This document shows positions 3,731 through 59,765 of a stretch of DNA of 64,000 nucleotides, one piece after another. The translations under genes were made by a program, and so were the position numbers. The notes beneath the pieces are model-generated. The model was not told where the DNA came from and searched no databases. It saw nothing but the letters and a program-made list of their open reading frames with translations. The stretch spans positions 806,001 to 870,000 of the forward strand of contig CBFFSA010000007.1 in assembly GCA_965644495.1 (NCBI GenBank), read 5' to 3'. This DNA comes from Perkinsela sp. CCAP 1560/9 (lineage: Eukaryota; Protista; Euglenozoa: Kinetoplastea). The stretch's first letter is position 1, and the number at the start of each line of letters is the position of its first letter.

Positions 3731-4255
3731 TTAATACCGTCCTCTTCCCCTCCCTCTCCCCCGTCCTCTTCCCCTCCCCCTCCTCGGAAAATACCCCCGC
3801 CCCCCCTCCTCCCCCTCTCCCCCCTCCTCCCCCCTCCGTGCCCCCCCTCCTCGTCCCCTTCCTCTCCCCCCTCGTCCCCTCCCCCTTCCTCTGGAACGGT
3901 TCGGCGCAACGAAACCCTCTTGCCACAAGGGCCCCTCATGCCCCTCTCCCCCCTCTCTCCCCGCCTGCTCTTCGCCCCAAGGCTCCCCCTCTCTTCCCGC
4001 TGCTGTATTCCCTTGGTGTCCCCCAGAAGGGGGAGGAGGGGGAGGGGGAAGGCTAGCATCGAGCTGCTGTATCACATGGACAATGTCACTCATGTCGAGT
4101 GCACGTCGTACCAGTGACACGAGATGGGGGACCAGGGGGGAGGGCTCGGGGAGGGGAGAGGGGAGACCGTGAGGAGGGGGAGGGGGAGGAGGGGGAGGTC
4201 GTCGTACAAAGGGGGGTCGTCGTCCACGAGAGGGGGGGTGGGGGTAGGGGGACAT
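3731..4255 (-). CDS. Hypothetical Pro-rich / RG-repeat protein (~174 aa from MSPYPHPP)
   Basis: Open frame across skew island 1 with a short non-repetitive core (LVSLVRRALDMSDIVHVIQQLD) and RGRGRG tail; may be a compositional artefact. Confidence 0.4.
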   Translation of the reverse strand: MSPYPHPPSRGRRPPFVRRPPPPPPPPPHGLPSPLPEPSPLVPHLVSLVRRALDMSDIVHVIQQLDASLPPPPPPPSGGHQGNTAAGREGEPWGEEQAGREGGEGHEGPLWQEGFVAPNRSRGRGRGRGGRGRGRGGGARRGEEGGEGEEGGRGYFPRRGRGRGRGRGRGRGRY

Positions 4256-4300
4256 GGAGTACGGTAGTTGGGGTGGGGCGTAGCGGGTAGGAAAGGTGTG
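3740..4300. other. GC-rich skew-switch island 1
   Basis: + strand C-runs at 3740-4023, G-runs at 4028-4300. Confidence 0.85.
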
Positions 4301-4583
4301 AAAATGAGAGAAATAATGAAAAAAGGGGAAAATGTGGGAATGCTGAAAATTTGAGTTGTGTAAAGGTTGGGAAATGACATAGTTTCGTTTTTTTGTGAAT
4401 ATGGGGATGAAAAATAGGGGAGTGGGAGATCCAGTGGGAGGTATTCTTTGTGTTTGTGTGGGGAAGGTTTTCGGAAAATGGATGGCTAAAGGAAGCGTTG
4501 GATGAGAAGAGATACAAGATATACCTGAATAGGATCGTTTGTTCAATGTTTGTGGAAATAGGTATATAAGGGTGCTCATAGCC

Positions 4584-5522
4584 CTAAAAACGATAAGTGT
4601 TATTACAGAGTTCATGTGATGCGTTCCAGGCAAGAGATAAAAGAAGCTTATTCCATCCTTCATCGGATGTTAAACACGTCGCAGAAGGTGAGCCGCCAGC
4701 AGGATTCCGGCGCTGAAATCTCGACCCTGACCGACATGTCGGTCTTTTTTGTGAGGGCAGAGCATCGATCAATGGCGCTTTCTTATGCGCCAGATCGCGA
4801 CGTAGGCAATCGTAGCAGTACAACAAGTAAGCCACGTCTGTACATGCGTATTCAATCATTTCTTGGGGTAAAGGACGAAGAGTCCAATCCCAGCGAGCCA
4901 TATGCTTTTCCACTTGAAATGAACAATAATGTGAAAGAAGGTGAGCGAGACCTGTTTTGTTGTGATGAAGCAGACGAAGTGCGTTTGATGTGTCAAATAA
5001 ATTACATACAAAGATGTCAAAGTCTCGCTGAAGCCATTTCAAATCGTGGCGTGGGTCATGCGCCACTTTTACTATTCGTGGATTAAGAAAGGGTAAGCGA
5101 AGACGAGGAATCAGCGAGTCGGGTGAAAGAGCATCAAGTAGAAACACTTGGTTCCGTACAGCAATTTGTAAAAGACAACAGCGCTCGCCTGATTCATCGG
5201 TGTTATGCTCTACGTCAAAGGCGAATTCCTGGCAAGTGTCCAGCACATCAAGCAAATCGCCCATACCTTCGCGAGATGTGATAATTTCTGGAAAAGTTGT
5301 AAGGGGTAGTACCGTAGAAACTTCGATGGGAATCTCAGTGTGCACGGATATACGATTGAGCCTTTGGACGTAAAAGTTTCGAAGAATTTGACCTGCTCTC
5401 GAAACCAAATCAGGCGAAGCAGTAGTAGTGCAGCGTTTAGTATCCCATGGTTTAGTGTCCCATACTGAATGAAACTTCGTAGCATGTGGTCGCAAACGCG
5501 CTGAATTCAGCAAACGAATCAT
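4584..5522 (-). CDS. DEDDy 3'-5' exoribonuclease, RRP6/RNase D-like exonuclease domain without HRDC; mitochondrial-like N-terminus
   Basis: FAFDVEH, LLQIA, DLKWLQRDF, NLFDT, DWTLRPL, YACTDVAYL motifs. Confidence 0.85.
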   Translation of the reverse strand: MIRLLNSARLRPHATKFHSVWDTKPWDTKRCTTTASPDLVSRAGQILRNFYVQRLNRISVHTEIPIEVSTVLPLTTFPEIITSREGMGDLLDVLDTCQEFAFDVEHNTDESGERCCLLQIAVRNQVFLLDALSPDSLIPRLRLPFLNPRIVKVAHDPRHDLKWLQRDFDIFVCNLFDTSNALRLLHHNKTGLAHLLSHYCSFQVEKHMARWDWTLRPLPQEMIEYACTDVAYLLYCYDCLRRDLAHKKAPLIDALPSQKRPTCRSGSRFQRRNPAGGSPSATCLTSDEGWNKLLLSLAWNASHELCNNTYRF

Positions 5523-5816
5523 GTTATATCGTGAATTTTCTCGAGCACTATCTGTTAAGCGACATACGGCAATATTCTTCTGCCGCTTTTTTTGTTAGCA
5601 TTAATCAAGAAAAATAACTTCTGCCTAATTTGTTTACTTCCAGTACCATTACCAGCAATGATGTTTTATTTATAAATGTAAATCCAAGGTGTCTGCCAAT
5701 ACATGGGAGTTCAGTCTTTTATACACTCATTGATTCCTACAAATAGTACTCAGTAAATCTTCATCGAAGACGTTTATTCAAGTAGCTTTGGAATGTTCTT
5801 TAATTTCACGACGAAT

Positions 5817-13908: not shown

Positions 13909-16134
13909 TCATTCAAACTCCTTTAGCCAAGAGTGTTGCAACAGTTCTGCCGCAGAGGGACGTCGCATCGGGTCTCGCTCGAAGCATAATGACAAGAAAT
14001 CCGTAACCTGGGGATCGAGATCCGACGGCATTTGGGATGGAAGACCGGCGGAGTTGGCAATGTGGTACACGGCACTCCACATGGAACTAAACTCCGGCCA
14101 CGGGGGTTTTCCAGTGAGCATCTCGACTAGGGTGCAGCCCACGCTCCAGATGTCAGCTTTTGCACCGTATCCTCCGGAGTCTTCTTTAATTACCTCCGGG
14201 GCCATCCAGTAGGGCGTTCCTACCATAGAGCGACATCCATGGGATTTGTTACAGAGCGTTTCAATGGAACGACTGCACCCAAAATCGGCCAATTTAATCA
14301 CCCCGTTGGTGCCCACCAGAATATTTTCTCCTTTGAGGTCGCGATGCACAATGTTGTTCTCGTGGAGGTATTGGACACCTTCGACAATCTGCCGAAGCCA
14401 GGCACGAATAACATCGAGAGACAGCTGTGTGAATTTTTTAATAAACGAACGTAAGTTTCCCCCCATGACGTGCTCCATGAAAATACAAATACGTCCCGCT
14501 TCCATGTCCTCTACATAGCCCTCCAGTCGGACAATATTTTTGTGTTGTAGGCGCTGCAAGAGACTGATTTCGTTGCGAAGGGTGCGTAGGTCAGACTCTG
14601 CGTCCTCAAGTGAGCCGACATCAATGATTTTCACTGCTGTAATGACTCCAGTCGGAAGTACGGCCTCGTACACACAACCATAAGACCCTTTCCCTATGAG
14701 ACGTCCGATACTCGCCCGTTTCGCCAAAGCTCGGAATTCCTCATTGGTTTTTTGCTGCTTCCCAGAGGTTTGTATCACTTCACTTTCGGAGTTGCGTTGG
14801 AGTGGAACACTCGTCGATTTATCACGGGATAGACTAAGCTCCGTTCGTACGTTGTTCTCGGATGTCTGCGTTTTCGAATCTATACTCTCCTCCCCTTTAA
14901 AACTAACGGAGAGCGAGGATCGCGCGCTGGAGATCTCACTTCTGTCATCGCCCTGGAAACTCAAATAACCCAACGACAGTTTCTCCCTCCACATCCGCTG
15001 ATACCGAAACGTGGCATCCAGAAAATCCCCCAGCGCGTTATCCCCCCGCGCCACCCTCCGCGGCGCCCCCCTCAACGCCCCCTGCTGCCAGCACCCCATC
15101 ACCCACCCCCCTTTCACCAAACTCTCACACCCCTCCCCGTGCCGCATCCCCTTCATAAAATACCCATGAAACACCTCCCCATCCGCCCACCGAAACGAGC
15201 CCCGCCCGTGGGGCTTGGACGCCCTAAACCCCCCCTCGTACACGTTCCCCTCCACCATCCGCCACACCCCATACCCCTCCCGGCGGTCGCCCTCCCAGGT
15301 GCCGTAGTACTCCGAGCCGTCCGCGTAGGTCACCCGGCCCACCCCCTCCCGGGCGTCCCCGACCCACTCCCCGTCGTAGCGGCACTCCGGGGTCTCCTCC
15401 CTCCCGCGGCCGTGGCGCTGGTTGTTGCGGTAGGCCCCGTGGTAGTACCCGGCGCCGTGGGGGGCGGTGGTCCGGCCGATCCCCTCTCGTTGGTTGTGGG
15501 CGAAGGCGCCGTGGTAGGTGGTGCCGTCGGCCCAGGTGTAGGTGCCGGTGCCGGTCTGGGTGTTGTGGGCCCAGTCGCCGGTGTAGGTGTCGTGGGTGTC
15601 GGCGAAGGTGAAGGTGCCGTGGCCGTGGGGGAGGCCGAGGGGGGAGAGCTGGCCGTGGTAGGTGCCGTCGGGGGTGTGGAGGGTGTGGAGGGGGGGAGAG
15701 GGGGTGGGGGTGTTGGGGGGATCGGGGTGGGAAGGGCGAAGGGGGTTGTTGCTCGTGTGGCTGTTGCTGTTACTGTGGGGATTGAAGAGGAGGGAGGAGG
15801 AGAGGGGGGTAGAGGGGGTGGGGGAGGTGGTGGGTTTGTTGTGGTTGTTATGTTGGGGATCGTTGTAGTTATTGCTATTGTTATTCTGGGTGGTGGTGGT
15901 AGTGGTATTTTGGGGATTGAGGAGAATTGAGGAGGAGAGGGGGAGGGAGGGCGTGGGGTTGTTCTGCCTGCAGTTGTGTTTGTTATCGTGGGTAATGTTG
16001 TTATTGTGCGTGTTGCTGCTGTTGGGATTGAAGAAGGGGGAGGAGGAGAGGGGGAGAGAGGGTGTGGGGGGAGAAGGAGAGGGGGAAGGTGTGATGGGAA
16101 GGGAGGGGGGAGGGGGAAGATGGGATGAGGCCAT
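13909..16134 (-). CDS. MORN-repeat STE11/MEKK-like protein kinase
   Basis: Multiple YxGxWxxxxxxGxG MORN repeats; GKGSYG, AVK, HRDLKGEN, DFG, GTPYWMAPE, DIWSVG. Confidence 0.93.
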   Translation of the reverse strand: MASSHLPPPPSLPITPSPSPSPPTPSLPLSSSPFFNPNSSNTHNNNITHDNKHNCRQNNPTPSLPLSSSILLNPQNTTTTTTQNNNSNNYNDPQHNNHNKPTTSPTPSTPLSSSLLFNPHSNSNSHTSNNPLRPSHPDPPNTPTPSPPLHTLHTPDGTYHGQLSPLGLPHGHGTFTFADTHDTYTGDWAHNTQTGTGTYTWADGTTYHGAFAHNQREGIGRTTAPHGAGYYHGAYRNNQRHGRGREETPECRYDGEWVGDAREGVGRVTYADGSEYYGTWEGDRREGYGVWRMVEGNVYEGGFRASKPHGRGSFRWADGEVFHGYFMKGMRHGEGCESLVKGGWVMGCWQQGALRGAPRRVARGDNALGDFLDATFRYQRMWREKLSLGYLSFQGDDRSEISSARSSLSVSFKGEESIDSKTQTSENNVRTELSLSRDKSTSVPLQRNSESEVIQTSGKQQKTNEEFRALAKRASIGRLIGKGSYGCVYEAVLPTGVITAVKIIDVGSLEDAESDLRTLRNEISLLQRLQHKNIVRLEGYVEDMEAGRICIFMEHVMGGNLRSFIKKFTQLSLDVIRAWLRQIVEGVQYLHENNIVHRDLKGENILVGTNGVIKLADFGCSRSIETLCNKSHGCRSMVGTPYWMAPEVIKEDSGGYGAKADIWSVGCTLVEMLTGKPPWPEFSSMWSAVYHIANSAGLPSQMPSDLDPQVTDFLSLCFERDPMRRPSAAELLQHSWLKEFE

Positions 16135-16200
16135 AGGTGATATCGATCGGTGTCTGTACTACAGACGGTAGAAAATACACCCGGCGGTCAGGGTGGGGGG
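15020..16200. other. GC-rich skew-switch island 2
   Basis: C/A-rich to ~15410, then G/T-rich. Confidence 0.85.
15778..16070 (-). repeat. Three ~50-bp coding repeats (PTPS[LT]PLSSSxxxNP) separated by AAC-rich spacers
   Basis: gggattga..gaggaggagagggg..agagggxgtgggg copies at ~15778, ~15912 and ~16024. Confidence 0.75.
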
Positions 16201-16506
16201 TTCATGTAAAGAGGAGGGTGGAAAATGGGATGTCAAATCTATTGTTTGGTTTCCTTTGTCAAATAAGAGGATATTACAACTCATAAACTGGTAGAAAGAA
16301 GGAAAGACTGGGAAAGAGTAGAGGAGTGATGATCTGAGTCATGCGCTCCCTACTTTAGCCCATCTTTCTTCCTTTCCAGCCGAGTCGAAATACACTGAAA
16401 TTTTAACATTGCTACAATTTTCAGCGAAAAGTGAAGCACAAGTAGAAAAATCTGATGGCTCAGTACTCTTCATGGGAATTTGGCACCCGCATCCTATCTG
16501 GTCATA

Positions 16507-23720: not shown

Positions 23721-23934
23721 AACAAATGTGAGTTGAGGAAAGAGAAAGAAAAGACCATATTCAAAGATCATGACCCCATAATCATGATTCATACAGGTAC
23801 CGCAATCATTACAGGTACAGTAAGTCAATCGTGCTTTCCCTGCCGGCTACGCGAACGTCGGCCCAATCTTTAGACCCACTCAAAAGTTTGAAATGCTCAA
23901 ACAAAAAAAAAAGAATCTTTTCCACGGTTATTCC

Positions 23935-25030
23935 CCTACCCTTTCCAAAATCCACCCCCCTCACCCCCCCCCTCTCTCTCACCCAAACACCTCCCCCCTA
24001 TGATACCCACACACCCTCCCCTCCACCTCCCCCCTCTTCCCTATCCCCCGTATCCTCCTCAAATCACGCCGCATGGCATCCTCATACTCCTCCCCCCCCC
24101 TCCTCCTCCCCCCTCCCCCTTCCCCTCCTCCCCCTCCCCCCCTCTCCACGCCCCGCCGCTCCACCTCCCCCGCCGTCCACCGCTCCACCTCCCGCAGGCA
24201 CCTCTCACACCGCAGCCCCTCCGCTGCCCGCCCGACGTGGTGGGTGACGTACCACGTGGAGACCCGGAGCTGGGACCAGGCGTACTTCACCAGGGGGACG
24301 GTCCCCAGCGCGGTGGCCAGCCCCAGGGGTACCCGTGCCGCGGCCCACCGGGGGGAGGCCAGCCCGTGGGGGGAGTAGTGGGTGGCGGCGAGGCCGGTGG
24401 CGGCGGCGAGGGCGAGGGCGGTGTTGAGGTGGAGGGTGTCGTAGAGGCGACGACCGCCGTGGGCGTGGCGGGAGACCCCGGAGAGGAGGGCTTGGCGGTA
24501 GAGACCGAGGGGGGGAGGGGGAGGGGGGGGGTTGTGGATAGGATGCGTAGGGTTGTGGTTGTTGTTGTTGTTGTTGATCGTATTCGTAGTGTCGTTGTTG
24601 ATAGCCTTCGTAGCGTTGTTGTTGTTGTTATGGTTACCAAAGTTAGTTTCGTTGTTGTTATTGTGGTTAACATCATTTTGAAACTTTGGGTTGTCGTTGT
24701 TGTTGTTTGTGGTGGTGGGGGTATTCTTGTTGATACTATCGTTGTACTTGCCCTGGTTAAGGGTATTCTTGTTGATTTTTCTAATCTCGGCTTCATCGAT
24801 AAAGATATGGCTCCCATGGACCTCGACGGGGTTGCCTAGGACGGTGGAGAGATGGGGGACGTTGTGGAGGGTAAAGCGTCGGGAGGTGAGACGTTGGGCG
24901 TCTTCAGTGACGGCACGGGTGAGGGCGTCGGAGAGGGGGGAGGAGAGGGAGGAGATGTGCAGCACGGCGTTGTGGAAGGCACCAGGTTGACTGCTGAAGA
25001 GAGCTTCCATGGAAGGGGGGAAGAGAGGGA
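23935..25030. other. GC-rich skew-switch island 3
   Basis: C-rich to ~24235, then G/T-rich with (gtt)n. Confidence 0.85.
23979..25010 (-). CDS. Hypothetical membrane protein with Asn-rich insert
   Basis: 343-aa ORF across skew island 3; two hydrophobic segments; poly-N, poly-P and poly-G tracts. Confidence 0.55.
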   Translation of the reverse strand: MEALFSSQPGAFHNAVLHISSLSSPLSDALTRAVTEDAQRLTSRRFTLHNVPHLSTVLGNPVEVHGSHIFIDEAEIRKINKNTLNQGKYNDSINKNTPTTTNNNNDNPKFQNDVNHNNNNETNFGNHNNNNNATKAINNDTTNTINNNNNNHNPTHPIHNPPPPPPPLGLYRQALLSGVSRHAHGGRRLYDTLHLNTALALAAATGLAATHYSPHGLASPRWAAARVPLGLATALGTVPLVKYAWSQLRVSTWYVTHHVGRAAEGLRCERCLREVERWTAGEVERRGVERGGGGGGEGGGGRRRGGEEYEDAMRRDLRRIRGIGKRGEVEGRVCGYHRGEVFG

Positions 25031-25294
25031 GAGCGTAAAGAAAAATGGAAAGAAGAACGCCAGAAAAAATATAATGGGAATGAAAGAGGAGTGCACAGGT
25101 ACAGCGTGGTTAAAGCTGCGTGTTGTTGTGCAGAAAGGAACTAGCAAAGCGCGGGGTAATATAGAGAACGTAAGTATAATGGAAGAATATGCGGTGAAAT
25201 AAATTTTGTGAGTGATTTCTTGAAAACAGAGTGACTTCTTGGAAGCATGCAAATACATGGTGTGAAGGTCTCCTAATGACGCCTAACACCCTCA

Positions 25295-26866: not shown

Positions 26867-27313
26867 GCGAAGATAAGTCGATGAGGGCTCTAAACTATAG
26901 TATGAACCCTTGTGGAGAGACCTACTGCTAAGAATACGAAACCATGAGCCCAAGATGATTGAATTCGGACTCATTGTTGTGTGTATTAGGTAGTGGGTAG
27001 AAAAACTTTAAAAGTGTAGCTATCATCTGAATGTCAAAAACTAGCTTGAAAATATTTGCATCAGAACGTGATGTTACTAAAACTGTGAATCTGGTGTAAG
27101 ATTAAAGCTGAAAATCTGTTTAGTCGCAAAACAAGTACATCGAAACAAAGAAAAATTATGAGTCTGAGTCGGTATGAATATTTCAAGAGGCTAGGAGAGA
27201 AACAAATTCTTTTTTTATATTCCCTTCTTATCAATGAAAAGCCCATCCTGCAATTTAAAACTAGCAATCTTAAGTCCAGCGCCTTTCATTCACAGATGCG
27301 CTTGTATTTTCTA

Positions 27314-27907
27314 TCAGGCCGTCTCAGTTTTTGTCTCAGTGGTCTGTTCAGCTTCCTTTTCTTCTGTATCTGTCTTCTCTTCCGCCTTTTCGTTATCTTC
27401 ATCCTCATCGTCCAGGTCCTCATTTTCATCTTCCTCACCCATGTCTGGATAATCTTCTTCATCCCCCATTCCTCCCATACCCCCCATACCTCCCATTCCT
27501 CCCATACCCCCGAATTGTGACATGTCAAAATTTCCCATTCCCGGGAACCCCTCAGGGGCCTCATCGGCGTCCTTCCACAAGGACCAGTCCACCCCGACGT
27601 AGTGTTTGTTCGTCTTGGAGGGCTCAACGGTAAGTCGCTCCCACTCTTTGTTCTCGTCGGAGGCACTCTCCGCTTTGAACGCGCAGCAAGCTACCTTGTT
27701 GCCGTGTACTTTGAACGTGCTCTGGCTGGGGTCAATGCCTTTCAAAAGATTCAGAGCGGTGCGGTATGGTGTGCCATGCGAGGTGCACTCGAAAATGATT
27801 TTGCTTTCCTGGAAATCAACTTTGACGTCCTCCGCGTCGGCAATGAGAAAGGTAAGGAAGACACGGTCGTCGCGTTGTGCCCACTGCACTGGTGCAATTT
27901 TGGACAT
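27314..27907 (-). CDS. Hsp90 co-chaperone p23 (CS domain)
   Basis: PVQWAQRDDRVFLT, WERLT, VDWSLWKDADE, (GGM)n repeat, acidic tail. Confidence 0.92.
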   Translation of the reverse strand: MSKIAPVQWAQRDDRVFLTFLIADAEDVKVDFQESKIIFECTSHGTPYRTALNLLKGIDPSQSTFKVHGNKVACCAFKAESASDENKEWERLTVEPSKTNKHYVGVDWSLWKDADEAPEGFPGMGNFDMSQFGGMGGMGGMGGMGGMGDEEDYPDMGEEDENEDLDDEDEDNEKAEEKTDTEEKEAEQTTETKTETA

Positions 27908-28223
27908 AGAGGTGGTAAATAGAAAGTATAAAAGAGAACAATCTAGTGAAAAAAATAGGGGACGAGATGTTATTAGAATTTGAAATAGTCTTCGATTCAC
28001 CTCCACACACGTTGTTCACACAGCAAGCACCTTACAAAATTCAGTCTTACTCACTCGAAATCCAGAAATTGAGAGAGAAAAAACTCAAAAAGACGGAGTA
28101 AAATCCCAGATTCACCACAAGGGTCTATCTCCTACAACATACAATGTACGCTCGCAAACGATTATGCAATGCTTTCAACACGCTTGTTGTAAACACACTT
28201 TTAGAGCACTGATCGGATGAAAT

Positions 28224-42330: not shown

Positions 42331-44508
42331 TCAGGCGTCAGTTTCTTGTGGGCTTATAGTAGCAATCAAAGTACCTTTACTTAAGACGCTGTTTAAAGAG
42401 CAATGATACTTTACTGCACCACTCATTGAGCATTTTGCGCAATGCTCCATTTTCATGGCTTCGATTAGGGCGACTGTACTTCCCGACGTCACATGGGCTC
42501 CTTCGGGGAAACAAAACGCGATAATTTTTCCTTGTATTGTGCTATAAACGCTAGACGACTGCTGAATCGCTTTCTTTTTTCCACTCACAAAACTATTCAC
42601 GGTACTGTACTGAAGCGTTTCGTGCCCCGGAAGAAGGAGTTCCACTATGGGCTTCCCAGCTCCATCATGTGAATTTACGGCTCGAAACCGAATGACTTCT
42701 TTATTGTTTAGTGTTGTGACGTAATGATGTGGAGAGGCACTATTCTCTGCACTATGGTTTCTTTCATATGAGATGCTCATATGCATTCTCTGAGTGGGAT
42801 CTTCATTAAGGATATTTTGAGTTACAGTATTACATGTAGTCGACTTGTGTGATGAAAATCCATTTTGCCCTTCAGAGACTTCGAAATCCAAAATCAGAGT
42901 AAAATTTTCCACTTTGGGTTGCACAGTGTATTGGATAGAAAACGTTTCCTTGGTACGAGACGTCAAAATGAGTCTGGAGGTGTAATTTTGGTTTAAACGA
43001 AAAAAAGCGAATGGTGATGGATTACAATCGTTTCCCAACCACGAATCGTAAACTAAAACTGCCGCAGCCAACAAAGGAGCCACTTTTGGTGGCATGTCCC
43101 TGAGCAGTGCTTCGAGGTTCGCTTCTAAAAACCGTGTAGTTATACTGTTTTTCTGAACCGCGTCATGACGTAGAAGATTACCCAGCAAGTTAATATTCGT
43201 TGGAAATCCAGTAACGTGAAATTGTCGCATTGCATTTTGAAGAGCGTTCAGGGCGGAGCTCCTCTCTTTCCCTGAAGCAATCACTTTGGCAATTAAAGAG
43301 TCAAAATGCATCGATATTGTATCACCGCTTCTAAATCCGCAATCGATACGAACGTTTGTCCCCGGTTCTTCGACAATTTCGCTTGCTGGTGTCAAATAAC
43401 TGATAACACCATTGGAAGGCGCAAACTCTTGATCCGGTGCCTCAGCACACAATCGCGCTTCGATGGCATGACCGACCACTTCAACGTCGTCCTGAGAAAA
43501 CGGCAAGGGTTTACCCGCGGCAATCTCCAGCTGCAGCTCCACGAGATCTACACTTTCTCCACACGCCCGGATGATGGCCTCCGTGACCGGATGCTCCACT
43601 TGCAGTCTTGTGTTTACCTCCAAAAAGAAATACTGCCGAATGTCGGGGTCATACATAAACTCCACCGTTCCCGCACCCTCATATTCCGCGAGATGCACAA
43701 TTTGAACCGCCGTGCTTGTCATCGCCTCCCTTATCTCCCTCGGCACGCCTGCTGGAGCTTCTTCCACAATTTTCTGATATCTTCTTTGCAAGCTACAATC
43801 TCGGGTTCCCAAATGCACCGCCTTACCCTTACCATCCCGTACCACCTGTACCTCCACATGCCGAGCGTTCGTAAAGAAACGTTCGAGCAAAACTTTGTCA
43901 TCTCCAAAGCTGCGCATGGCGTCTCGACGAGAGGCTTGTAATTTTTCAGAAAAACTCTCGGGATTGGGGACAACAACCATCCCCCTCCCCCCTCCGCCCG
44001 CTACGGCCTTAATCAACAAAGGATAGCCCAGTTTTTTAGCCTGGCTCTTCAGCGTGCTCTCGGTCTGATCCTCTCCACTGTAGCCCTGAATCACCGGAAT
44101 GTTATTTTTCAACATTAGTTTTTTACTTTCACTTTTATTTCCGAGGAGTCGAATGACCGCACCAGAGGGACCGACAAAGGTGAGCGCATGTTTTGACAAG
44201 AGATCCGCGAAATCCGCATTCTCACTTAGAAACCCGTAGCCCGGGTGAATCGTATCGGCCCCGGATTGTTGAGCCACACTTAATATTTTTTGTGCATTTA
44301 AGAAAGTGTTGGCAGCAGGGGGAGGACCAAGGGAGTAAGCTTCGTGGGCCATAGAAACGTGAAGTGCAGAGGCCTCGGTTTCGTCAAAAACAGCAACCGT
44401 TCGTAGCCCGATGCGACGGGCCGTGCGGAGGATACGACAGGCAATTTCGCCGCGGTTCGACACCAGGAGTTTGGAGAGGTGAAGACAGCCGGTGCAAGGG
44501 GAAAACAT
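42331..44508 (-). CDS. MCCA: 3-methylcrotonyl-CoA carboxylase alpha subunit (biotin carboxylase plus biotin carrier)
   Basis: NRGEIACR, HPGYGFLSENADF, GGGGRGM, RDCSLQRRYQK, EVNTRLQVEHPVTE, EAMKME. Confidence 0.85.
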   Translation of the reverse strand: MFSPCTGCLHLSKLLVSNRGEIACRILRTARRIGLRTVAVFDETEASALHVSMAHEAYSLGPPPAANTFLNAQKILSVAQQSGADTIHPGYGFLSENADFADLLSKHALTFVGPSGAVIRLLGNKSESKKLMLKNNIPVIQGYSGEDQTESTLKSQAKKLGYPLLIKAVAGGGGRGMVVVPNPESFSEKLQASRRDAMRSFGDDKVLLERFFTNARHVEVQVVRDGKGKAVHLGTRDCSLQRRYQKIVEEAPAGVPREIREAMTSTAVQIVHLAEYEGAGTVEFMYDPDIRQYFFLEVNTRLQVEHPVTEAIIRACGESVDLVELQLEIAAGKPLPFSQDDVEVVGHAIEARLCAEAPDQEFAPSNGVISYLTPASEIVEEPGTNVRIDCGFRSGDTISMHFDSLIAKVIASGKERSSALNALQNAMRQFHVTGFPTNINLLGNLLRHDAVQKNSITTRFLEANLEALLRDMPPKVAPLLAAAVLVYDSWLGNDCNPSPFAFFRLNQNYTSRLILTSRTKETFSIQYTVQPKVENFTLILDFEVSEGQNGFSSHKSTTCNTVTQNILNEDPTQRMHMSISYERNHSAENSASPHHYVTTLNNKEVIRFRAVNSHDGAGKPIVELLLPGHETLQYSTVNSFVSGKKKAIQQSSSVYSTIQGKIIAFCFPEGAHVTSGSTVALIEAMKMEHCAKCSMSGAVKYHCSLNSVLSKGTLIATISPQETDA

Positions 44509-44857
44509 GAGGGTGATTAGTGTGGCATTATGATATTTTTCTCCAATTTAACAAGCACTTCGAGAGTAAGACTAGAGATTAGGGGAATGGAGGGCGCACG
44601 ATATTCCAATTATAAAATGAGTATAGATTTTAAATATTGATATCCCAAATTTCATTCTTGCTTACCATGCATGCATTCATTTTAAATATTAGAACAATTT
44701 ATTTTTCGTCTATCTGTTTAATATTCTCCAAATGCACTCCGATTCTTGTGTCTATTTCTGCATGTAGGATCCATCTTGCTGAGGGGGGGTCAAGAATGAT
44801 CAACTGTTATCAAAGATTGCTAATCATCAGCAAGCAGGAATTTGTGTGAGTAGCACC

Positions 44858-46387
44858 TCATTTCTTAGACAAGTACCTGCTTTGTAAATGATCTTGAAAA
44901 TGTTTCGGGTTTAGATCTTCTCCCGTGGATTCCACTAGTATTTGTGAAACACTCTTCAAAGACGCCTTTTTCCACACGTTCTCATCTAAAAATTCGAAAA
45001 TAAAATCGAACTCGCCATTTCCCACAAGCCGATCAAACGCCTTATGTTTACGACGAAGGGCAACCGCAAACTGTGCAGCATACATGGCGCCCAAGCTGTA
45101 GGTGGGAAAATAACCAAAAGCCCCCGTGGACCAGTGAATATCTTGCATGCACCCATCCTTGTAATTTCCTGTGGTGTCGACGCCCAAGTACGACATCATC
45201 TTTTCCTGCCAAAGGTCTGGGATGGCTTCGGGCTCAATTTCTCGGTTAATCAAAGCTCTCTCAATTTCGTAGCGCAGAATAATATGCATCGGGTATGTTA
45301 GCTCATCGGCATCCACGCGAATGAACCCAGGACGTACCTCTGTCGACAAACGTTGTAGGTTTTCGGGGGTAAAAACAAGATCATTCTTTTCCTTCAATGG
45401 ATTCACACCGAAGTATTTCGCGATCATGGGTTGTATGGCACGTAGGAAGGCCAGGGATCGGCCTAGCTGCATCTCCATAAAAAGCGACTGACTCTCGTGC
45501 ATCCCCATTGAACGTGCGCGTCCTGCAGGTTGAGTGCTCCACTCGTGAGGCAAATGCTGTTCGTACTTTGCGTGCCCGGTTTCGTGAATCACTCCCATAA
45601 GACTTTGAAATGCGAGCTCAGGATCCTCTCCGTATCGCGTGGTGATGCGCACATCGTCCGTGACACCGCCGCAAAAGGGGTGAGTGCTGACATCCAGTCG
45701 TCCAGCATCGCAATCAAATTTTAACACCTCCATTGCTTCTTTTCCCAACGCTTTCTGATTCTCGATCGGAATACGTCCCGCTACTCTGTGAATCGTAGCC
45801 TCCTTTTGCTGCGCCACAACTGTGCGAATGAGCTCTGGAAGCTATGACTTTAGGGAACCAAACGCTTCAGAAATTTTCTCCGAAGTCATCTCGGGCTCGT
45901 ACTTATCCAACAGCGCATCATAGGGTGTGGAAAACCCATACGAACGCTGCAGCAACTCTGCCTCCTGCCGTGCCAGAGAGACGACCTCAGAAAAATTTTC
46001 TAAAAAACCCTTCCAGTTATTTGCCCCCCGTTGGGTTCGCCATCCATGTTCACACTTATCATTGGCCATGGAGATACGCCGGACTAAATCCGCCGGGAGG
46101 GCATTGGCCGCACGCCACTGTCGTCTCATTTCACAGAGATTGGCTTTTTCGTTGGGCTCTAACGCACTCCCCGATGCTGCTGCGGTTTCTATCCACCCTT
46201 CAAGCTTTGTATCGGTGATAAGATCATGCGAATGGGATCGCAGCTCGGCAAGACACGCGGCTCGGCTCTCGACCCCTTTGTTGGAGACATTGACGCTAAA
46301 GTCCCAAGAGAGGATGGCGTCGGCATGGGCGTAGCGATGGAGTCGAGTGAAGACAGAGACGAGCTCCTTGTAGGCGGCGCGGGACAT
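44858..46387 (-). pseudogene. M32 metallocarboxypeptidase interrupted by one in-frame TAG (45842-45844); pseudogene, recoded gene or sequence error
   Basis: Both ORF halves share a frame (FGSLKS*LPELIRTVVAQQK, 509 codons). HPF, DVRITTRY, HETGH, HESQS, IRVDADE, QDIHW and GYFPTY are intact. Confidence 0.85.
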
Positions 46388-46731
46388 GGGGGAAAAGGAG
46401 GAGGTGCGAGGGGGGGAGGGGAAACAGTTTCTAAGGACAAGAAAGAAATAAAGGGTCGGGTGTAGCTAAAATAGGTAGGATAAAGGTAACCGCCATGACG
46501 TGTTCCACGTGCTTTTCTCCTTTTTTCTTCGCCTCTATCTACCGTAAAGGAGAATATAAAACATTTATAAACAGTGGACATTAGAATAAGGCTACATATT
46601 GTTAAAGAACTCAAGTATCAGATGATGTAATCCTGTTCGCATTGCAAAATACAATATGTAAGATTGTAAAAGGACTGTAGGCGCTGCAGGGACGTCTCAT
46701 GTGTACAAGGGTTATGTAAGAGCGATTCGAT

Positions 46732-47052
46732 TCACTCACCTTGCACAAGCTCCACGAGCTTACCGTTCTGTTTTAACTGCAGTAAAGCGTCGTATCCTCC
46801 AACATATTTCTGGTTAATGAAGATTTGAGGAACCGTGTTCGATCCCGTTCGACTATACGCGGATCGGAAGACTTCTCGCCCATTGGGAATAATATCGATT
46901 TCTAGTGAGACAAAGCGCTGGCCAACTTCAACAAGGACGGACTTGGCTTGAACACAGTAACTGCAATAAGTAGCGCTGATTACCACTACCTTGTTCTGTC
47001 GGAGCATTGTATTTAAAAATTCCGAGGCTTTGTCCGGATTAAGTTCGCTCAT
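46732..47052 (-). CDS. GRX2: Dithiol glutaredoxin, kinetoplastid Grx2-type
   Basis: SATYCSYC, RFVSLEIDIIPNGREVF, TVPQIF, GGYD; closely resembles trypanosome Grx2 (recalled). Confidence 0.88.
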   Translation of the reverse strand: MSELNPDKASEFLNTMLRQNKVVVISATYCSYCVQAKSVLVEVGQRFVSLEIDIIPNGREVFRSAYSRTGSNTVPQIFINQKYVGGYDALLQLKQNGKLVELVQGE

Positions 47053-47206
47053 GGGCTGACTCTGTGTTTCAGTGTGATGTTATTTGAATAGACGTAAAAA
47101 CAGAAGAAAATGTAACAGTACTTTAGTACCATAATAAAGGGTTATCATGCTTTGCCAAAACATTAATCTGAAAATCTATACTTCTGGAGACTTTACAAAG
47201 ATTGGT

Positions 47207-47818: not shown

Positions 47819-48098
47819 TCTGTAGAAACGGAATGATGGTCAATGCGAACTTCCACGTTGAAGAAATCTAATAAACCGCATTTCCGGAGGCTTCCTTCAT
47901 GAAAAGTGTTTGAACGAAAACGTTAAATGAAACTTAATAAAAACTCTGGTGAGTCACAGAAGTCGAACAAAGCTGAAATGAAACAATCGAGAAACGAACC
48001 GAAGTAAAATAATAAAAGATTCATGAATCCGACACATCAAAGTAATCAATAGTCTCGTTCGCTCAAGCGTTACAGTACGTGCTTCGTAAGAAAGTAGC

Positions 48099-48386
48099 TT
48101 ATTTGTTCGACAATGCACCCGGAGGTAATCCCATATGGGCCTCTTGCTCCCGTCGCTCCCTGGATTCTCCAAGGAAGGTATACACTTCAAAGAAACGATC
48201 AACACATCGCTTCTGGCATTGAAGCTGAGATGGTGTGGGCTCCTGAAACTCACCCTGGGAGAGTATATTGCCATCCATCGAACTGTCGTAGCAAGTTCTC
48301 CAACACAGGCCAATGGAGTGTGATGCTAAGTCGACCATTACACCTTGGTCCATTCCCTGGTGAAGCGCGAATTGCTGAGCATTCAT
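48099..48386 (-). CDS. Small Tim chaperone (twin CX3C), kinetoplastid Tim11-like
   Basis: CWRTC...CQKRC; C-terminal RERREQE...GLPPG resembles a trypanosome small Tim (recalled). Confidence 0.75.
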   Translation of the reverse strand: MNAQQFALHQGMDQGVMVDLASHSIGLCWRTCYDSSMDGNILSQGEFQEPTPSQLQCQKRCVDRFFEVYTFLGESRERREQEAHMGLPPGALSNK

Positions 48387-48602: not shown

Positions 48603-51242
48603 TTATGTTCCCCACCGCTTGGCGTTAAATACAGTAACACCCGTAAACTCTTCTTCCGGCGTCGAACATAAAATGGCCACACCTCGTACATTTCGTTTCT
48701 CATGTGACCCGTTCATTATTCTATTGCTGACTCTCGTGAAAGGAAAAGCTAGTCGAGCTTTTTGAATAGTATATATTTTTAATTCTGCTTCTTCAAAGTG
48801 AGTTTCTGCTGCAGCATCGCCACTGTCTTCTGTGGCAGAAGGGCATTCGTCCGTCTTAGTTTGAAACCCGTGCCAGTGCGCATCGACACATGCTGTGTAT
48901 TTCTGTCCAAGCGCAATTTTCGCAAAACCGTCCGGCCCGTATGCAAAAATGTTCGGCAATGAGCGGGAAAAAACCTCCGCAAAGAGTTCACCTTTTCCCG
49001 GCTTAAGAATACTAACTTCGGGAGAAAGTATTACGGCTCGTATTCCCGAACAAGCACTCCTCTTTCCATTTTCTTGACGCAAACGGGTAGAATACACCAA
49101 TTGACCCATCGACGGGGAGCACAGTGAAATAAAGTTTAATTGTTGGTCACGCGAAAGGGTAACAATACCGGCAAGTTTTGAAGCGCATGCTTCTTGATCT
49201 TTTAACGAATTCGAATCAGGGTCAGCAGGTTCAGAAAACGGAACTAAAACAACATCTACGATCGCACTACTCTCAAAACAATCCACGGAATCCCTATCCC
49301 CCATCCGAATCCTTCCCGGAATTGCGGAGTACACCACCGTCCTCGTCCCCGCATCCCACACAAAAACACAACTATTCCTATCTGTGATCGCGACCATGTT
49401 TTCAAAACAAACCACGCGCGACACACACTGGCTGCAGGTGAGAACGGCGAATACCTCCCCGTTGGACGGCTCCACTCCCCACACCTTACCATCCGCACAC
49501 CCGACGATCAGCACCCACTCTTGTGAGCCCACTGAGGCAAACCCCATTGTCGTGATCCCGCACACATTTCGGGAAATTCCTCTACTGGTGCCAAACCCCT
49601 CCGGAGCCGTAATCGATACGTTTGAGGCCGAGGCCTCATACACACGTATCACCCCCAGGGAGATATCCGTAGCATACGACCCCCAGGTTGCGTCACCCGA
49701 CAACGCTACACATCGCACATTTCCAGGAAGCGCTTTTGTCGAAAACTGGGCTAACGTACGCACTCGTGTCGAAGACGTAAGCTGCCACAGAAACAGTCCC
49801 GCTTTTCCAATCCCCAACACCAAAGGACGACAACCCTCAGAAGAACCATACCCAACCGCATACCCTTGACCGGGGTGAACCGCAATCTCATGTTTCACCA
49901 CATTCCCCCTCATCTCCAGCCAGCTACGCCCAAACATCTCACGAAACCCCTCCTCACGGTTCGTCACAAAAAGCTCTCCATCTAAACCGGCAGAAATCAC
50001 ACAAAAAGAACCAGAAGCGGAACCAGCAGAACCACCAGAACCCGCCCTACTCGTCACACAGGTCACATCATTCCAATGGACCCTTCGGGTGCGTCGTCCC
50101 ACCCGCCACCCCTTCCCCCCCTCCCCCTCAGCCTCCAGCGTCACCACATCCCGTGCCACCCCGACCCCCACCACGGTCGTGTCCCCCACGAAGGCGACAC
50201 TCAGCATTGCAGCCCTCGAGAGGTGAAAGCTGTGGGAGACGAACCCCCCGGCGGTGTCACACACAAAGAGGTCCCCGGTGTGGGTGCCGGCCACCGCGAC
50301 GGAGGGGTGGGAGGGGTGGGAGGCCAGGCAGAGGACAGAGGGGACCGTAGGGGGCGTAGTGTGGCCGGCTGCTGCTTTTTGTCCTGCCACACGGAGCAGG
50401 ATGCTTTTTGAGGGACGGATGACAAGGGAGGAAGCACGGCCGATTCGTGTGGTGTTGGTTGTTGTTGCTGTGTTGGTTGTTGTTGCTGTGTTGGTTAACG
50501 ACAACGATGCATCTTTTTTTGTGGTCTCGATAAACCGCAGGGTATCAAACACTTGTACACAGCCGTAGTTGTCCCCGAGGAGGAAGGTGGCCCCGTGGGG
50601 GGAGGGGGCGACACAGAGTGCGGCGGTGGCGCTGGGGTGCTTGGTGCCGACCCCGCGGAGGGTGAAGTGTTGGGAGGGGTCGAATACCCGAGTGGTGCCG
50701 TCCTCACAGGCGGTGAGGAGGTAATGGGGGAGGGAGGGGGGAGGGGAGGTTGTGGGGTTGTGGGGAGAAGCATGATTTTGTTGTGGGGGTTGAAAGGTAA
50801 GGGTTGTGGCATGAAAGAAGCCGCCTCCAGAAGGGGGGGTGAGGACTTCTTTTAAAACTAGAGAGCGTGCATCGTAGATGAGGAACTGGCCGGAGAGAGT
50901 GGCAGCGACCAGAGATTCCATTAGCATTGATGCAGAGGCGGTCTCATCTTCCACCATCTCCTGTACACTTTGCGTCGTGGGAGAGGAGACGCACCAGAGA
51001 AGGGACCGGATGGTAACGGATTTCAGACCGCTGGCTTGGACGGCAGGGCGGAAAGGGGTGTAGTTTTTGGCGGTTTTGTCGGATTCGTACTCGACAAGCC
51101 TAGATGTGTCCGCCGTTCGTGTCCATATTTCAATACCCCCGTCATCTCGAACCAGTGCAAGTCGTAGACCGGAGTGGTCGAGGGAAAGAGTGGTTATCCC
51201 AACGGGTGGACGGTGTACCGGTAACTGGCGAATAGATATCAT
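48603..51242 (-). CDS. UTP4: WD40 protein, U3 snoRNP-associated UTP4/cirhin-like
   Basis: ITTLSL..RLALVRDDGGIEIW, IRSLLW, HWNDV, ISAGLDG; WD40 repeats with low-complexity inserts. Confidence 0.7.
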   Translation of the reverse strand: MISIRQLPVHRPPVGITTLSLDHSGLRLALVRDDGGIEIWTRTADTSRLVEYESDKTAKNYTPFRPAVQASGLKSVTIRSLLWCVSSPTTQSVQEMVEDETASASMLMESLVAATLSGQFLIYDARSLVLKEVLTPPSGGGFFHATTLTFQPPQQNHASPHNPTTSPPPSLPHYLLTACEDGTTRVFDPSQHFTLRGVGTKHPSATAALCVAPSPHGATFLLGDNYGCVQVFDTLRFIETTKKDASLSLTNTATTTNTATTTNTTRIGRASSLVIRPSKSILLRVAGQKAAAGHTTPPTVPSVLCLASHPSHPSVAVAGTHTGDLFVCDTAGGFVSHSFHLSRAAMLSVAFVGDTTVVGVGVARDVVTLEAEGEGGKGWRVGRRTRRVHWNDVTCVTSRAGSGGSAGSASGSFCVISAGLDGELFVTNREEGFREMFGRSWLEMRGNVVKHEIAVHPGQGYAVGYGSSEGCRPLVLGIGKAGLFLWQLTSSTRVRTLAQFSTKALPGNVRCVALSGDATWGSYATDISLGVIRVYEASASNVSITAPEGFGTSRGISRNVCGITTMGFASVGSQEWVLIVGCADGKVWGVEPSNGEVFAVLTCSQCVSRVVCFENMVAITDRNSCVFVWDAGTRTVVYSAIPGRIRMGDRDSVDCFESSAIVDVVLVPFSEPADPDSNSLKDQEACASKLAGIVTLSRDQQLNFISLCSPSMGQLVYSTRLRQENGKRSACSGIRAVILSPEVSILKPGKGELFAEVFSRSLPNIFAYGPDGFAKIALGQKYTACVDAHWHGFQTKTDECPSATEDSGDAAAETHFEEAELKIYTIQKARLAFPFTRVSNRIMNGSHEKRNVRGVAILCSTPEEEFTGVTVFNAKRWGT
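49840..50845. other. GC-rich skew-switch island 4
   Basis: C/A-rich (tail extends to ~49250) to ~50220, then G/T-rich. Confidence 0.8.
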
Positions 51243-51724
51243 GAAGTCGAAAATTATTCAAAGAATTCTTTTGTCATTTCCTTTTAAAAAAGCATTACAT
51301 AAAAACATTTATGGTCCCTGAGAAATATTGTTCAAATTACATCGTACTATACAACACCAATAATTTGTAGTATAGTATATTATTCGAATCAACAAACTCA
51401 AGTTTGATGGCAAGTATGAAATAATAGCTCTGCTGACTCTGCTAATTCGGCATATTCCACAGCTGCGGATTTTTTCAACACCACTTATGACGTGCTGTGA
51501 CGAATTCGCAAGCAAAAAACGAAAGTGACAATTATCATGCAGTGTGTTTCTGAACACAAAAGCAGAGCTTTAGAGCAAAATACCAAGTCGCGCATTGCTC
51601 TAAATTGGAAGAAACTAAATAATAGAAACCAAACTCATAGGGAAAACCTTGGCTTTACAAATAGGTTCAAATAGGTGTTCTCTACTGCTCCACGTACATA
51701 CCAGAACCTACTTTGAGCGGGCTG

Positions 51725-52030
51725 TCAATGTAAAAAAGAAAACAACTCTTGCAAGTAGTAAATCATCTCAATTCGTTGTCTTTGATAATGTTCCTTAAGA
51801 TCAGCAACAACCTTAGCTCTCGCGTGCTGCACAGAAATTTCATTTTTCCGTAAGCTTTCTAGTAATTCCCTTTGCTGCAGAAGTGTAATAAAAGATGCTG
51901 GTTGCATCAGTTCCTCGGAAAATGATTGATATAATTGTTTCAAAGTGTTGAATTCATCCCATTCATTTGTGTGGACGAAATCACTAAATAACAAATCGGG
52001 TGTCTCAGTCTTAATCCTGCGACCGGTCAT
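51725..52030 (-). CDS. Small hypothetical helical protein
   Basis: 101-aa ORF on the coding strand. Confidence 0.45.
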   Translation of the reverse strand: MTGRRIKTETPDLLFSDFVHTNEWDEFNTLKQLYQSFSEELMQPASFITLLQQRELLESLRKNEISVQHARAKVVADLKEHYQRQRIEMIYYLQELFSFLH

Positions 52031-52479
52031 ATCGTATACTTCTGTATATTTAATACTCGTATATGAATGTAGTGTTAAATGTTATTCTACGTTCATTAAA
52101 TGTATCAGCATTCTGTAAATATATTTTTTTGCCGCTTCGTTAAACACTGGGTATTTTCAATTTAGAAGTCACTCATGTTGCTAGCTTCGCGTTCGGGCGG
52201 GCAAATGATTTCCTTTTCTAAAAAATTCGAACTAAAAATTCGAATTATCGAAATCTTTCCGGATTGCTCCGGACGGTCGCTGGTAAACCAGACCCTTCAC
52301 AGACAGATTTCGAAGTTCCGAGGCCTCCTTTACTAGTTTCTGTTTCTCCAAGGCGGCACCAATGTGCTGTTACCAGCACGCTGCGTCGACGAATTGTAAG
52401 TCAACACGGCTTACCCAAGAAGTTTAAAACAAATGTGGTTTCTCGTAGTGTCTCAAATCATCAAAAATACCAGGGGTCT

Positions 52480-57707: not shown

Positions 57708-57899
57708 CTAATCTGACCACTGACCCGTTTTTCGGGTTTCATTAGCGATCTCTGCATTTTTATTGGCGTCCTGATTGGCCAAACAGTAAGCTTGTGAAAC
57801 AGGATCCATACAGGGGATTGGAACTGCGCTATTCCGACGAAATTCCTCCAAATCATCCGGTACACCGATGTCAATTTTGGTAAGCGGTCGACGAATCAT
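57708..57899 (-). CDS. CDC26: APC/C subunit Cdc26-like
   Basis: N-terminus MIRRPLTKIDIGVPDDLEEF matches the Cdc26 MLRRxPTxLxLxxDDxxEF pattern; 63 aa. Confidence 0.6.
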   Translation of the reverse strand: MIRRPLTKIDIGVPDDLEEFRRNSAVPIPCMDPVSQAYCLANQDANKNAEIANETRKTGQWSD

Positions 57900-58207
57900 T
57901 CTGATTATTTACATAACAATTGTTGCTTATCAATTGAAGAATGCTAGTATGGTACAATTTACACTGGCGGAAAGGACGAGGGTGTAATAATAATCGAAAG
58001 GTACAAGCATCGCCTATTATCTGCCTACTTCGCACATACATCTTCACTTACTCTTACTTACACTTGTATACATCTTCAATTAGTGACACAAATCGTACGA
58101 CACAAATCATAGTGATACTATGACGAAAAATAAGTTGTTATAAATGCTTCCGTCAATTGAACCGATACTGTAACTAGAAACTATGTCTGAGTTTGCAGAT
58201 TAGAAAA

Positions 58208-59740
58208 TCACTTCGTAGAGATATCTTCTATGGAGGATTTCTGTTGAGCGCACGAAAGAATTTTCCGCGCAAGCGCACTAGTGGCGATAATGCTTATATC
58301 ACGGAGAGACATCCATTGGCCGCTTTCGTCACGGTCTGCTGCTTCACTCAAGTCAAGGACTTCATTGCCAAGGGTCTCAAAAACGGATTTCTCTTCCTGT
58401 TTGAGTGGATCAGTGGTTTCCATTTTTGCCTTCCGGGACTTGCATTTCGTCCTCGTAGGTTGAGGTTCGGGCTGTCTTGGTGAGATGCTTTCCTCTGAGC
58501 TATGTAGGCAAAACAGGCCAGAAAAGACTCGAACGGTCATGTGAATGTGAGAAAAAATGTGGACAATTTCACCGTTTGAAGAAATGGACCCGGCCTCAGC
58601 TCCCGAACATTGGGCAGCTTTATGAAGAGTTGTCTTGATCTTCGAAAGTGTTGCGCTCTTCGCGACGGTAATAGTAGGAAAATCCCATAAATTCGCCAGT
58701 AAGCCATTAGGTGGCCTCTTCGACATCCACACAGATTCCGCCTCCTTGTTAAAAATAACTAACGCAGCAACGGTCTCGCGCCTCACTTTGGATCGTTTCG
58801 CTTTCACGTCAAGATTATTCGATTCATCTGTCCTCCGAAGCTTTCCCTTTGATCTTTTTGAAACTCGTGCAGGTTTTTCTCTACTTACTTTACCTCCGTT
58901 CGACTCTGAGAGTTCCGGACTTATCTCACGTGTATTCCTCAGCGGGATAACCCCGGCAATCCCCCCTTCACCCAACTTCCCCTCCTTTTGCAGCGCCAGC
59001 GCCCTACAATGCGCACGAACCGGGCACCCCTCACACCGCACCACCTTCGGCATACACACCGTCGCCCCGAGCTCCATCACCGCTTGATTCCACTCCCCGG
59101 GGTTCTCCTGTCGCATCATCCGGGTCGCCAACGCCGTCACCCGTCGCTGATCCCCCGGCCTCTTCACATCCAACCCCCGCACCCCCCCGAGCCTCGCATA
59201 CACCCGCGTGACATTCCCATCCACCGCCGCGGCCCCCACCCCGAACGCCATCGAGGCAATCGCGGCTGCCGTGTAGGGTCCAATCCCGGGGATCTCCCGC
59301 AGCTCGGGGACGGAGCCCGGGAGCTCCCCGCCCCACCTCCCCACCACGAGCTGCGCCCCCGCGTGCAGCCCCCGGGCGCGTCGGTAGTACCCGAGCCCGG
59401 ACCACAGCCCGTGGACCTCCTCGAGGGAGGCCGCGGCGAGGGCGGCGGGGGTGGGGAAGCGGGCCATCCAGGCCGCCCAGTACGGGAGTACGGTGGCGAC
59501 GCGGGTCTGCTGGGACATGACCTCGGCGACCCAGATGGCGTAGGGGGAGGGGGTGTGGGGGGGGCGCCAGGGGAGGGGGCGGTGCGCGGTGGTGTACCAC
59601 GAGGAGAGGGCGCGGTGGAAGCCGGGGAGGTCCTCGAGGTCGGGGAGGGGAGCGGGGGAGGGGGAGGGGGGAGCGGGGGGGGTGGTGGTGGGAGGTGGGG
59701 AGGAGGGAAGGGGGGGTTTCGGAGGGATAGGGTGTCGCAT
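58208..59740 (-). CDS. MUTY: A/G-specific adenine DNA glycosylase
   Basis: RPLPWR, WVAEVMSQQT, WSGLGYYRRA, HhH IPGIGPYTA, VDGNV, Fe-S motif C-X6-C-X2-C-X5-C, GLLANLWDFP, HIFSH. Confidence 0.96.
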   Translation of the reverse strand: MRHPIPPKPPLPSSPPPTTTPPAPPSPSPAPLPDLEDLPGFHRALSSWYTTAHRPLPWRPPHTPSPYAIWVAEVMSQQTRVATVLPYWAAWMARFPTPAALAAASLEEVHGLWSGLGYYRRARGLHAGAQLVVGRWGGELPGSVPELREIPGIGPYTAAAIASMAFGVGAAAVDGNVTRVYARLGGVRGLDVKRPGDQRRVTALATRMMRQENPGEWNQAVMELGATVCMPKVVRCEGCPVRAHCRALALQKEGKLGEGGIAGVIPLRNTREISPELSESNGGKVSREKPARVSKRSKGKLRRTDESNNLDVKAKRSKVRRETVAALVIFNKEAESVWMSKRPPNGLLANLWDFPTITVAKSATLSKIKTTLHKAAQCSGAEAGSISSNGEIVHIFSHIHMTVRVFSGLFCLHSSEESISPRQPEPQPTRTKCKSRKAKMETTDPLKQEEKSVFETLGNEVLDLSEAADRDESGQWMSLRDISIIATSALARKILSCAQQKSSIEDISTK

Positions 59741-59765
59741 TTGGCGTGAAGGGTAGGGGGTAGGG
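58950..59765. other. GC-rich skew-switch island 5
   Basis: C-rich to ~59400, then G-rich. Confidence 0.85.

Follow-up and report, generated by a model that had tools for sequence, protein, structure and literature searches.

Mirror-symmetric C-to-G islands centred in coding sequence of Perkinsela sp. CCAP 1560/9, a possible footprint of replication initiation

Within a 64-kb stretch of the genome of the kinetoplastid Perkinsela sp. CCAP 1560/9 (positions 806001-870000 of contig C7 in a 21-Mb assembly of 110 contigs; hereafter, the window), short GC-rich islands occur in which a DNA strand turns from C-rich to G-rich in the middle of a gene. What process could impose such a switch on coding DNA? 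A first-pass annotation of the window proposed that five islands of this kind are bidirectional replication origins or some other strand-asymmetric focus of mutation or repair. The islands are a real, genome-wide and lineage-specific feature, marked by a bias that is mirror-symmetric, does not depend on transcription and operates up to ~0.8 kb from a point; we tentatively attribute this bias to replication initiation.

All five islands were recovered where they had been described (Table 1), with GC-skew jumps of 0.78 to 1.26 as measured with 400-bp windows, compared with null maxima of 0.48 under base shuffling and 0.75 under shuffling of 50-bp blocks. The genes of the window are intronless and, as noted previously, co-oriented, all long island-host open reading frames (ORFs) lying on the minus strand. 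The annotation had named the disappearance of the skew at four-fold degenerate sites as an argument against its proposal; instead, the skew is strongest at these sites, including those of conserved domains, and is seen in each codon family and each neighbour context. The background frequencies of C and G at four-fold sites are 22-24% each, whereas the strongest arms reach ~90% C and then ~90% G. At 150-450 bp from the centre, the MORN kinase island (15.4 kb) has C at 45 of 49 four-fold sites on the left and G at 53 of 58 on the right, and the MutY island (59.4 kb) has C at 48 of 61 and G at 41 of 52, respectively. The islands are present at ~99% identity in contigs of independent samples and in a second assembly and therefore are no assembly artefact.

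Table 1. GC-rich C-to-G islands of the window (window coordinates)
Feature	Extent	Switch point	GC-skew jump	Location
Island 1	3660..4570	~4025	1.26	Short ORF 3731-4255, minus strand, Pro-rich then Arg/Gly-rich
Island 2	14930..16340	~15420	1.02	Over the MORN repeats of the MORN-protein kinase 13909-16134, minus strand
Island 3	23750..25270	~24290 (~24230-24350)	1.14	Unnamed gene 23979-25010, minus strand
Island 4	49240..51080	~50240 (~50220-50280)	0.78	WD40 gene 48603-51242, minus strand
Island 5	58710..59900	~59390 (~59350-59420)	0.91	MutY 58208-59740, minus strand, inside the HhH-GPD domain
Weak island, same polarity	43700..44600		0.48	Biotin carboxylase gene
Weak island, same polarity	45800..46600		0.45	M32 carboxypeptidase gene, 5′ part
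Possible weak island	27200..28000		0.62	Acidic Gly/Met-rich protein tail, which explains part of the jump

An island is ~1.4 kb long (1.3-1.6 kb), and the composite profile is mirror-symmetric, with a four-fold GC content of 0.86 in the central 300 bp and a return to background by 1 kb. The four-fold frequency of C is 0.69-0.70 upstream and that of G is 0.65-0.70 downstream; the arm scores are alike (p = 0.10) and blind to gene direction. On each strand, the bias sets in ~150 bp ahead of the centre, favours G at the expense of each other base and is highest 200-400 bp out. At the four-fold sites of the G-rich strand, G attains a mean of 0.69, and each of the other three bases drops to ~0.1. 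The odds for G are shifted 7-29-fold. At two-fold sites of this strand, G is preferred over A and T over C; taken together, these patterns fit neither a bias purely towards GC nor one that consistently favours G+T. The left and right arms had been characterized as C/A-rich and G/T-rich, respectively, but the A/T part of this description does not hold: A/T skew varies between islands and is close to zero at the four-fold sites of the G arm, and the T excess is confined to two-fold sites. G-run arms had been described as able to form G-quadruplexes (G4); of the G4 motifs, 27 are in the top strand of the right arm and 19 in the bottom strand of the left arm, with none in the wrong arm. CpG is not enriched in the islands (observed/expected 0.5-1.0). 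The arms contain low-complexity coding tracts and local duplications; tests for true inverted repeats or inserted elements in the arms found neither. No centre motif shared by the islands rises above shuffles of local composition, as was also the impression of the first reading.

A survey of 264 kb of contig C7, which includes the window and contains no divergent strand switch, yielded 14 strong islands, and 17 GC-rich C-to-G switches as opposed to no G-to-C switch. Among motif positions on contig C1, there are 15 C-then-G pairs and one opposite pair, and scaling of motif counts yields ~570 strong islands in the genome, a rough figure best taken as ~500-600. Thus, islands of opposite polarity, far from being equally common, are missing. 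Since C-then-G reads alike on both strands, the "same polarity" previously ascribed to the islands means only this absence of the inverse class. The hosts are plus- and minus-strand genes with unrelated functions (chaperonin, MCM5, an exosome subunit, an LRR protein and others). The gaps between islands span 3-33 kb, with a mean of 19.6 kb, so the spacing of ~9-11 kb perceived earlier is local to the window and a regular 10-kb period is rejected, although the islands are more evenly spaced than random (coefficient of variation 0.55, p = 0.014). All 14 centres are located within ORFs (p = 0.002-0.018, a soft estimate since GC-rich DNA favours long ORFs); a concentration near start codons was rejected because the distances from the centres to the ATG match those of random coding positions.

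The islands are derived and specific to this lineage because the orthologous genes of four related lineages lack them, which speaks against the long-lived features initially envisaged. The orthologues of MutY, the WD40 gene and the MORN kinase in these lineages have flat codon profiles, and 86 kb of their sequence, divergent strand switches included, contains no islands compared with 4.6 expected (P = 0.01). Polarization of substitutions against relatives, which the annotation had suggested as a check, indicates that amino-acid changes run with the arms: with two outgroups as the reference, changes at first and second codon positions are directed towards C in the C arm and towards G in the G arm (p = 5e-7). 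The arm-directed change reaches conserved domains (MutY, MCM5, chaperonin), and yet the overall divergence of the host proteins is not faster. Moreover, host proteins gained Pro/Thr/Asn-rich extensions or insertions. The C-rich coding arm of the MORN kinase gene corresponds to a lineage-specific N-terminal extension of ~140 amino acids (aa) rich in Pro, Thr, Asn and His; MutY has a lineage-specific Pro-rich N-terminal extension; and the WD40 protein of island 4, which we take to be UTP4-like, contains a Thr/Asn insertion that is missing in its orthologues. The host gene of island 3 encodes low-complexity tracts of Asn/Pro and then Gly/Glu/Arg. The right arm of island 1 extends into the upstream spacer, its host reading frame being a candidate without homologue support. 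Gene order is common to the window and the contigs of related lineages. In a related lineage (L030:9000-14200), the four-fold sites of several genes close to a strand switch are rich in GC, but the skew does not flip.

Single-nucleotide polymorphisms (SNPs), insertions and deletions (indels) and the ratio of nonsynonymous to synonymous polymorphism (pN/pS) were compared in one haplotype pair across 21 kb (window 3912-25229). The SNP density is 10.9/kb in the islands and 8.9/kb outside; hypermutability of the islands, suggested by the location of 9 of 18 SNPs in one island on the haplotype with a broken MutY, was not upheld in this comparison. All eight coding indels, six of them in-frame, are in islands (p = 4e-6), a clustering that low complexity alone could cause. 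Outside the islands, pN/pS is 0.66; therefore, selection on proteins is weak in this lineage, and the island bias overrides it. The haplotypes alternate in mosaic fashion between blocks that are identical and blocks that have diverged, with edges at ~28.6, 48.1, 49.1, 52.1 and 60.4 kb, none of which is at an island centre and three of which are within 2 kb of one (one haplotype pair). Zero-SNP tracts at 28584-48120 (19.5 kb) and 49052-52123 (3.1 kb), in a background of ~0.9% difference, suggest recent recombination or loss of heterozygosity; island 4 lies inside such a tract. The second haplotype (runs X1 and X2; ENA assembly L024) has an 836-bp deletion (window 58202-59037) that removes the 3′ half of MutY and has one breakpoint inside the left arm of island 5, as well as a 1-base insertion near the 5′ end of the gene (window 59556). 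Both intact and deleted forms of MutY, for which the closest match is from Perkinsela sp. CCAP 1560/4 (37% identity), are present in runs X1 and X2, and loss of this 8-oxoguanine repair gene is possibly ongoing.

A bias that is blind to gene direction, symmetric and confined to 1.4 kb indicates a DNA transaction with a fixed centre. Our preferred interpretation, which we regard as a serious possibility that falls short of probable, is that each island records, in mutations accumulated over the long term, the initiation of replication at a site that is sharply fixed, free of motifs and internal to a gene. The G-gaining strand would be the one left single-stranded as the lagging template while two forks escape the origin or, alternatively, the one copied by an error-prone start-up polymerase as the forks leave. 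Base loss on the exposed strand, followed by Rev1 filling in C opposite abasic sites, could convert any base to G while leaving G unchanged, and the resulting G-run, G4-prone arms may hold the site open and so fix its place. From the origin onward, these steps are drawn by analogy. The genome encodes uracil glycosylases and a Rev1 orthologue (C7:767423-769387, adjoining a transposon cluster; best match human REV1, E = 2e-56), which shows that the chemical route is feasible and nothing beyond that.

The even spacing at ~20 kb suits origins, and, as at the main origins of Leishmania major, the local flip and G4 layout are independent of gene direction. The indel clustering parallels the raised rate of long indels at human constitutive origins, with low complexity as a possible cause; as to a raised, strand-inverting substitution rate, the long-term polarised changes do invert between the arms, and the SNP density of one haplotype pair differs little. 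Several observations weigh against initiation. The SNP density is near background, yet a mutation-driven shift in the odds for G of the size seen here should add more, although with one haplotype pair of blocky ancestry this is a weak test. The related lineages must also have origins but show no islands. Upstream and downstream flanks at 1-8 kb do not differ in G/C (p = 0.09-0.56) or T/A, and the A/T tracts around the island centres show no poly(dA)-then-poly(dT) arrangement. The origins of Trypanosoma brucei, mapped by stranded sequencing of short nascent strands (SNS-seq), are intergenic, A/T-flanked and opposite in G4 orientation (PMC13179062), the initiation zones of L. major are AT-rich (PMC12890776), and the large local skew flips at Candida centromeres have been argued not to derive from replication (PMC3459929). 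Furthermore, the classical replication skew in yeast is a 9% jump that decays over ~20 kb (PMC3459929), whereas the jumps in the islands are 78-126%, and no skew persists beyond 1 kb. Accordingly, the lagging-strand mechanism invoked in the annotation is ruled out, whereas its broader claim of a fixed, strand-symmetric process that rewrites coding DNA is supported.

An unlikely but by no means negligible alternative is that the islands are recurrent double-strand-break or recombination hotspots (Spo11-dependent or mitotic) with strand-biased heteroduplex repair. The new strand flips at the break, so repair that keeps G on the new strand would yield a centre rich in GC and a C-to-G flip as long as a conversion tract, altering fixation rather than mutation rate. 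This scheme accommodates the island size, the pure GC bias at the centre, where both two-fold classes shift, the high central four-fold GC combined with near-background SNP density, the directional change without faster protein divergence, the overriding of weak selection, and the enrichment of indels and duplications; a Spo11-type domain is encoded in the genome, meiotic genes are present in Perkinsela (PMC5601477), and the haplotypes are mosaic. Nevertheless, the preference for T over C at the two-fold sites of the G strand argues against plain GC-biased conversion, the block edges do not coincide with island centres, sex in this organism is only presumed, and lesions in the 3′ overhangs left by resection (C>G, A>G; PMC7615360) would, if we infer the geometry correctly, place G in the left arm, the opposite polarity. 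Somewhat less likely still, in our estimate, is the origin of the islands from internal bidirectional start regions of RNA polymerase II at which transcription within long polycistrons would begin anew, perhaps as a result of transposons filling the strand-switch regions; the G-rich non-template strands on both sides would form R-loops and would either be under selection as promoter elements rich in G/T or gain G by mutation. The per-strand polarity matches the GT-rich promoters of T. brucei (PMC5579346), GC skew at CpG-island promoters is similar (PMC3787257, PMC4617957), and the keto bias at two-fold sites and the richness of the genome in transposons are compatible with this scenario. However, the arm facing antisense equals the sense arm in strength, as opposed to the 4:1 sense bias of T. 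brucei starts, all centres are in coding sequence (with the p-values and reservation given above), the real divergent strand switches of two relatives lack an island, and site-by-site selection is hard to square with a pN/pS of 0.66. Trypanosome transcription start regions number on the order of 100-200 per genome, and islands at one per 20 kb are much more closely packed.

Centromeric loci supply both of the best precedents for a flip that is large, local and motif-free (PMC7511235, PMC3459929), KKT2-like proteins are found in Perkinsela (PMC8178753), and the islands are evenly spaced and lineage-specific, all of which could fit dispersed kinetochore sites every ~20 kb on holocentric chromosomes, of the type of the acetylated histone H3 (AcH3)/base J/KKT1 loci of Leishmania or of Candida centromeres, with or without origin activity. 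We deem this improbable: the precedent loci occur once per chromosome and outside genes, whereas the islands are GC-rich, short, coding and continuous in strength, and their number, in the hundreds, excludes a monocentric centromere. Because origin, start site and kinetochore coincide in Leishmania, these possibilities are not mutually exclusive, and there is a slim chance that a Leishmania-type origin-plus-kinetochore locus was multiplied to several hundred gene-internal copies in this endosymbiont lineage, making the chromosomes holocentric or creating a comparable chromatin site that reinforces itself without a motif; if so, the positions of the sites would be legible in the DNA and the host proteins rewritten by them. 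Trivial causes, namely protein composition, codon selection, inserted elements, repeat slippage or assembly error, could draw on the low-complexity tracts and local duplications of the arms, but are refuted by the four-fold-site and orthologue tests and have a vanishingly small likelihood: the signal is strongest at four-fold sites of conserved domains and present in each codon family, orthologues lack it, the frames are intact, the arms are not true inverted repeats and independent assemblies agree. The chance that some explanation other than all those listed applies is small.

The genome is transposon-rich, and its 138 matches to RNase H indicate an expansion of retroelements; RNase H-containing units with a period of ~748 bp form a tandem array on contig C45 (30765-46416), and a convergent strand switch at ~627-645 kb of C7 is filled with transposons. 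In the window, positions 32300-35600 are occupied by a degenerate non-long-terminal-repeat retroelement with reverse transcriptase remnants, adjoined by pyrimidine-rich tandem repeats (31800-32250); the skew jump at 32.3 kb, which is one-sided and located at the retroelement end, is not an island. The region C7:656115-683222 contains one gene in three copies of 970 aa with an Arg/Asp-repeat N-terminus and other DNA in between. The M32 carboxypeptidase gene is split by an in-frame TAG (window 45842-45844), a split shared by the second assembly, whereas in the relative L025 it is a single 513-aa ORF. The window also encodes a TAGT-family glycosyltransferase (18570-19913), a candidate base J glucosyltransferase of the base J pathway type.

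The islands are the strongest local strand-asymmetric footprint that we found described, in that synonymous sites are nearly fixed for one base, amino acids change in a set direction and new low-complexity extensions have arisen; literature searches with incomplete coverage turned up no report of such islands in Perkinsela or in coding sequence, nor of hundreds of them with coding centres. If they are origins, ~500-600 origins would be callable from sequence alone in a eukaryote without origin motifs, and origin choice and initiation-linked mutagenesis would become directly testable, and the island-free sister lineages could serve as controls; should the islands instead be break hotspots or start sites, this would be the first such map in this group. 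In either case, the signals that such genes give in codons, GC and protein composition should be read with caution, as reflecting position rather than function.

Among known systems, the main origins of L. major display a highly local skew flip that is independent of transcription direction (PMC7511235). Like the islands, these early-firing AcH3/base J/KKT1 loci are kinetoplastid, motif-free and without broad skew, and combine a local negative-to-positive change in G skew with G4 on the reverse strand upstream and on the forward strand downstream; unlike the islands, they occur once per chromosome in strand-switch or head-to-tail regions, are centromeric and show a matching T skew, whereas the islands number in the hundreds, are coding-centred, lack a consistent T skew and approach fixation at synonymous sites. 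At constitutive origins in human, a footprint of ~1 kb is seen, in which T>G, C>G and T>C changes are in excess and the strand bias inverts at the origin (PMC9645720). They share with the islands the changes towards G/C, more long indels, a local rise in GC, skew and G4 but differ in a modest variant excess, depletion of C>T and the lack of reported wholesale rewriting of codons and amino acids. The skew jumps at Candida albicans centromeres (PMC3459929) are likewise very large (74%), local (~3 kb to baseline) and motif-free, and their replicative cause is disputed on grounds that also apply here; they are, however, wider, gene-free and limited to one per chromosome. In the GT-rich start regions of T. 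brucei and in CpG-island skew (PMC5579346, PMC3787257), as in the islands, the G-rich strand points away from the centre, with a potential for R-loops and G4, but the T. brucei regions are sense-biased, several kb wide and located at the starts of transcription units, as opposed to the symmetric, mid-gene islands, in which CpG is not enriched. The SNS-seq origins of T. brucei (PMC13179062) resemble the islands in the mirror-symmetric layout of G4 within a few hundred bases of the centre but are of opposite G4 polarity, 85-92% intergenic and flanked by poly(dA)/poly(dT). An origin of this type was rejected for the islands, given their 14 of 14 centres in ORFs, the opposite G4 polarity and the absence of the A/T tract pattern. 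Thus, local skew flips are already known at origins, centromeres and promoters; what seems new here is their occurrence in the hundreds, with centres in coding sequence and a strength sufficient for recoding proteins.

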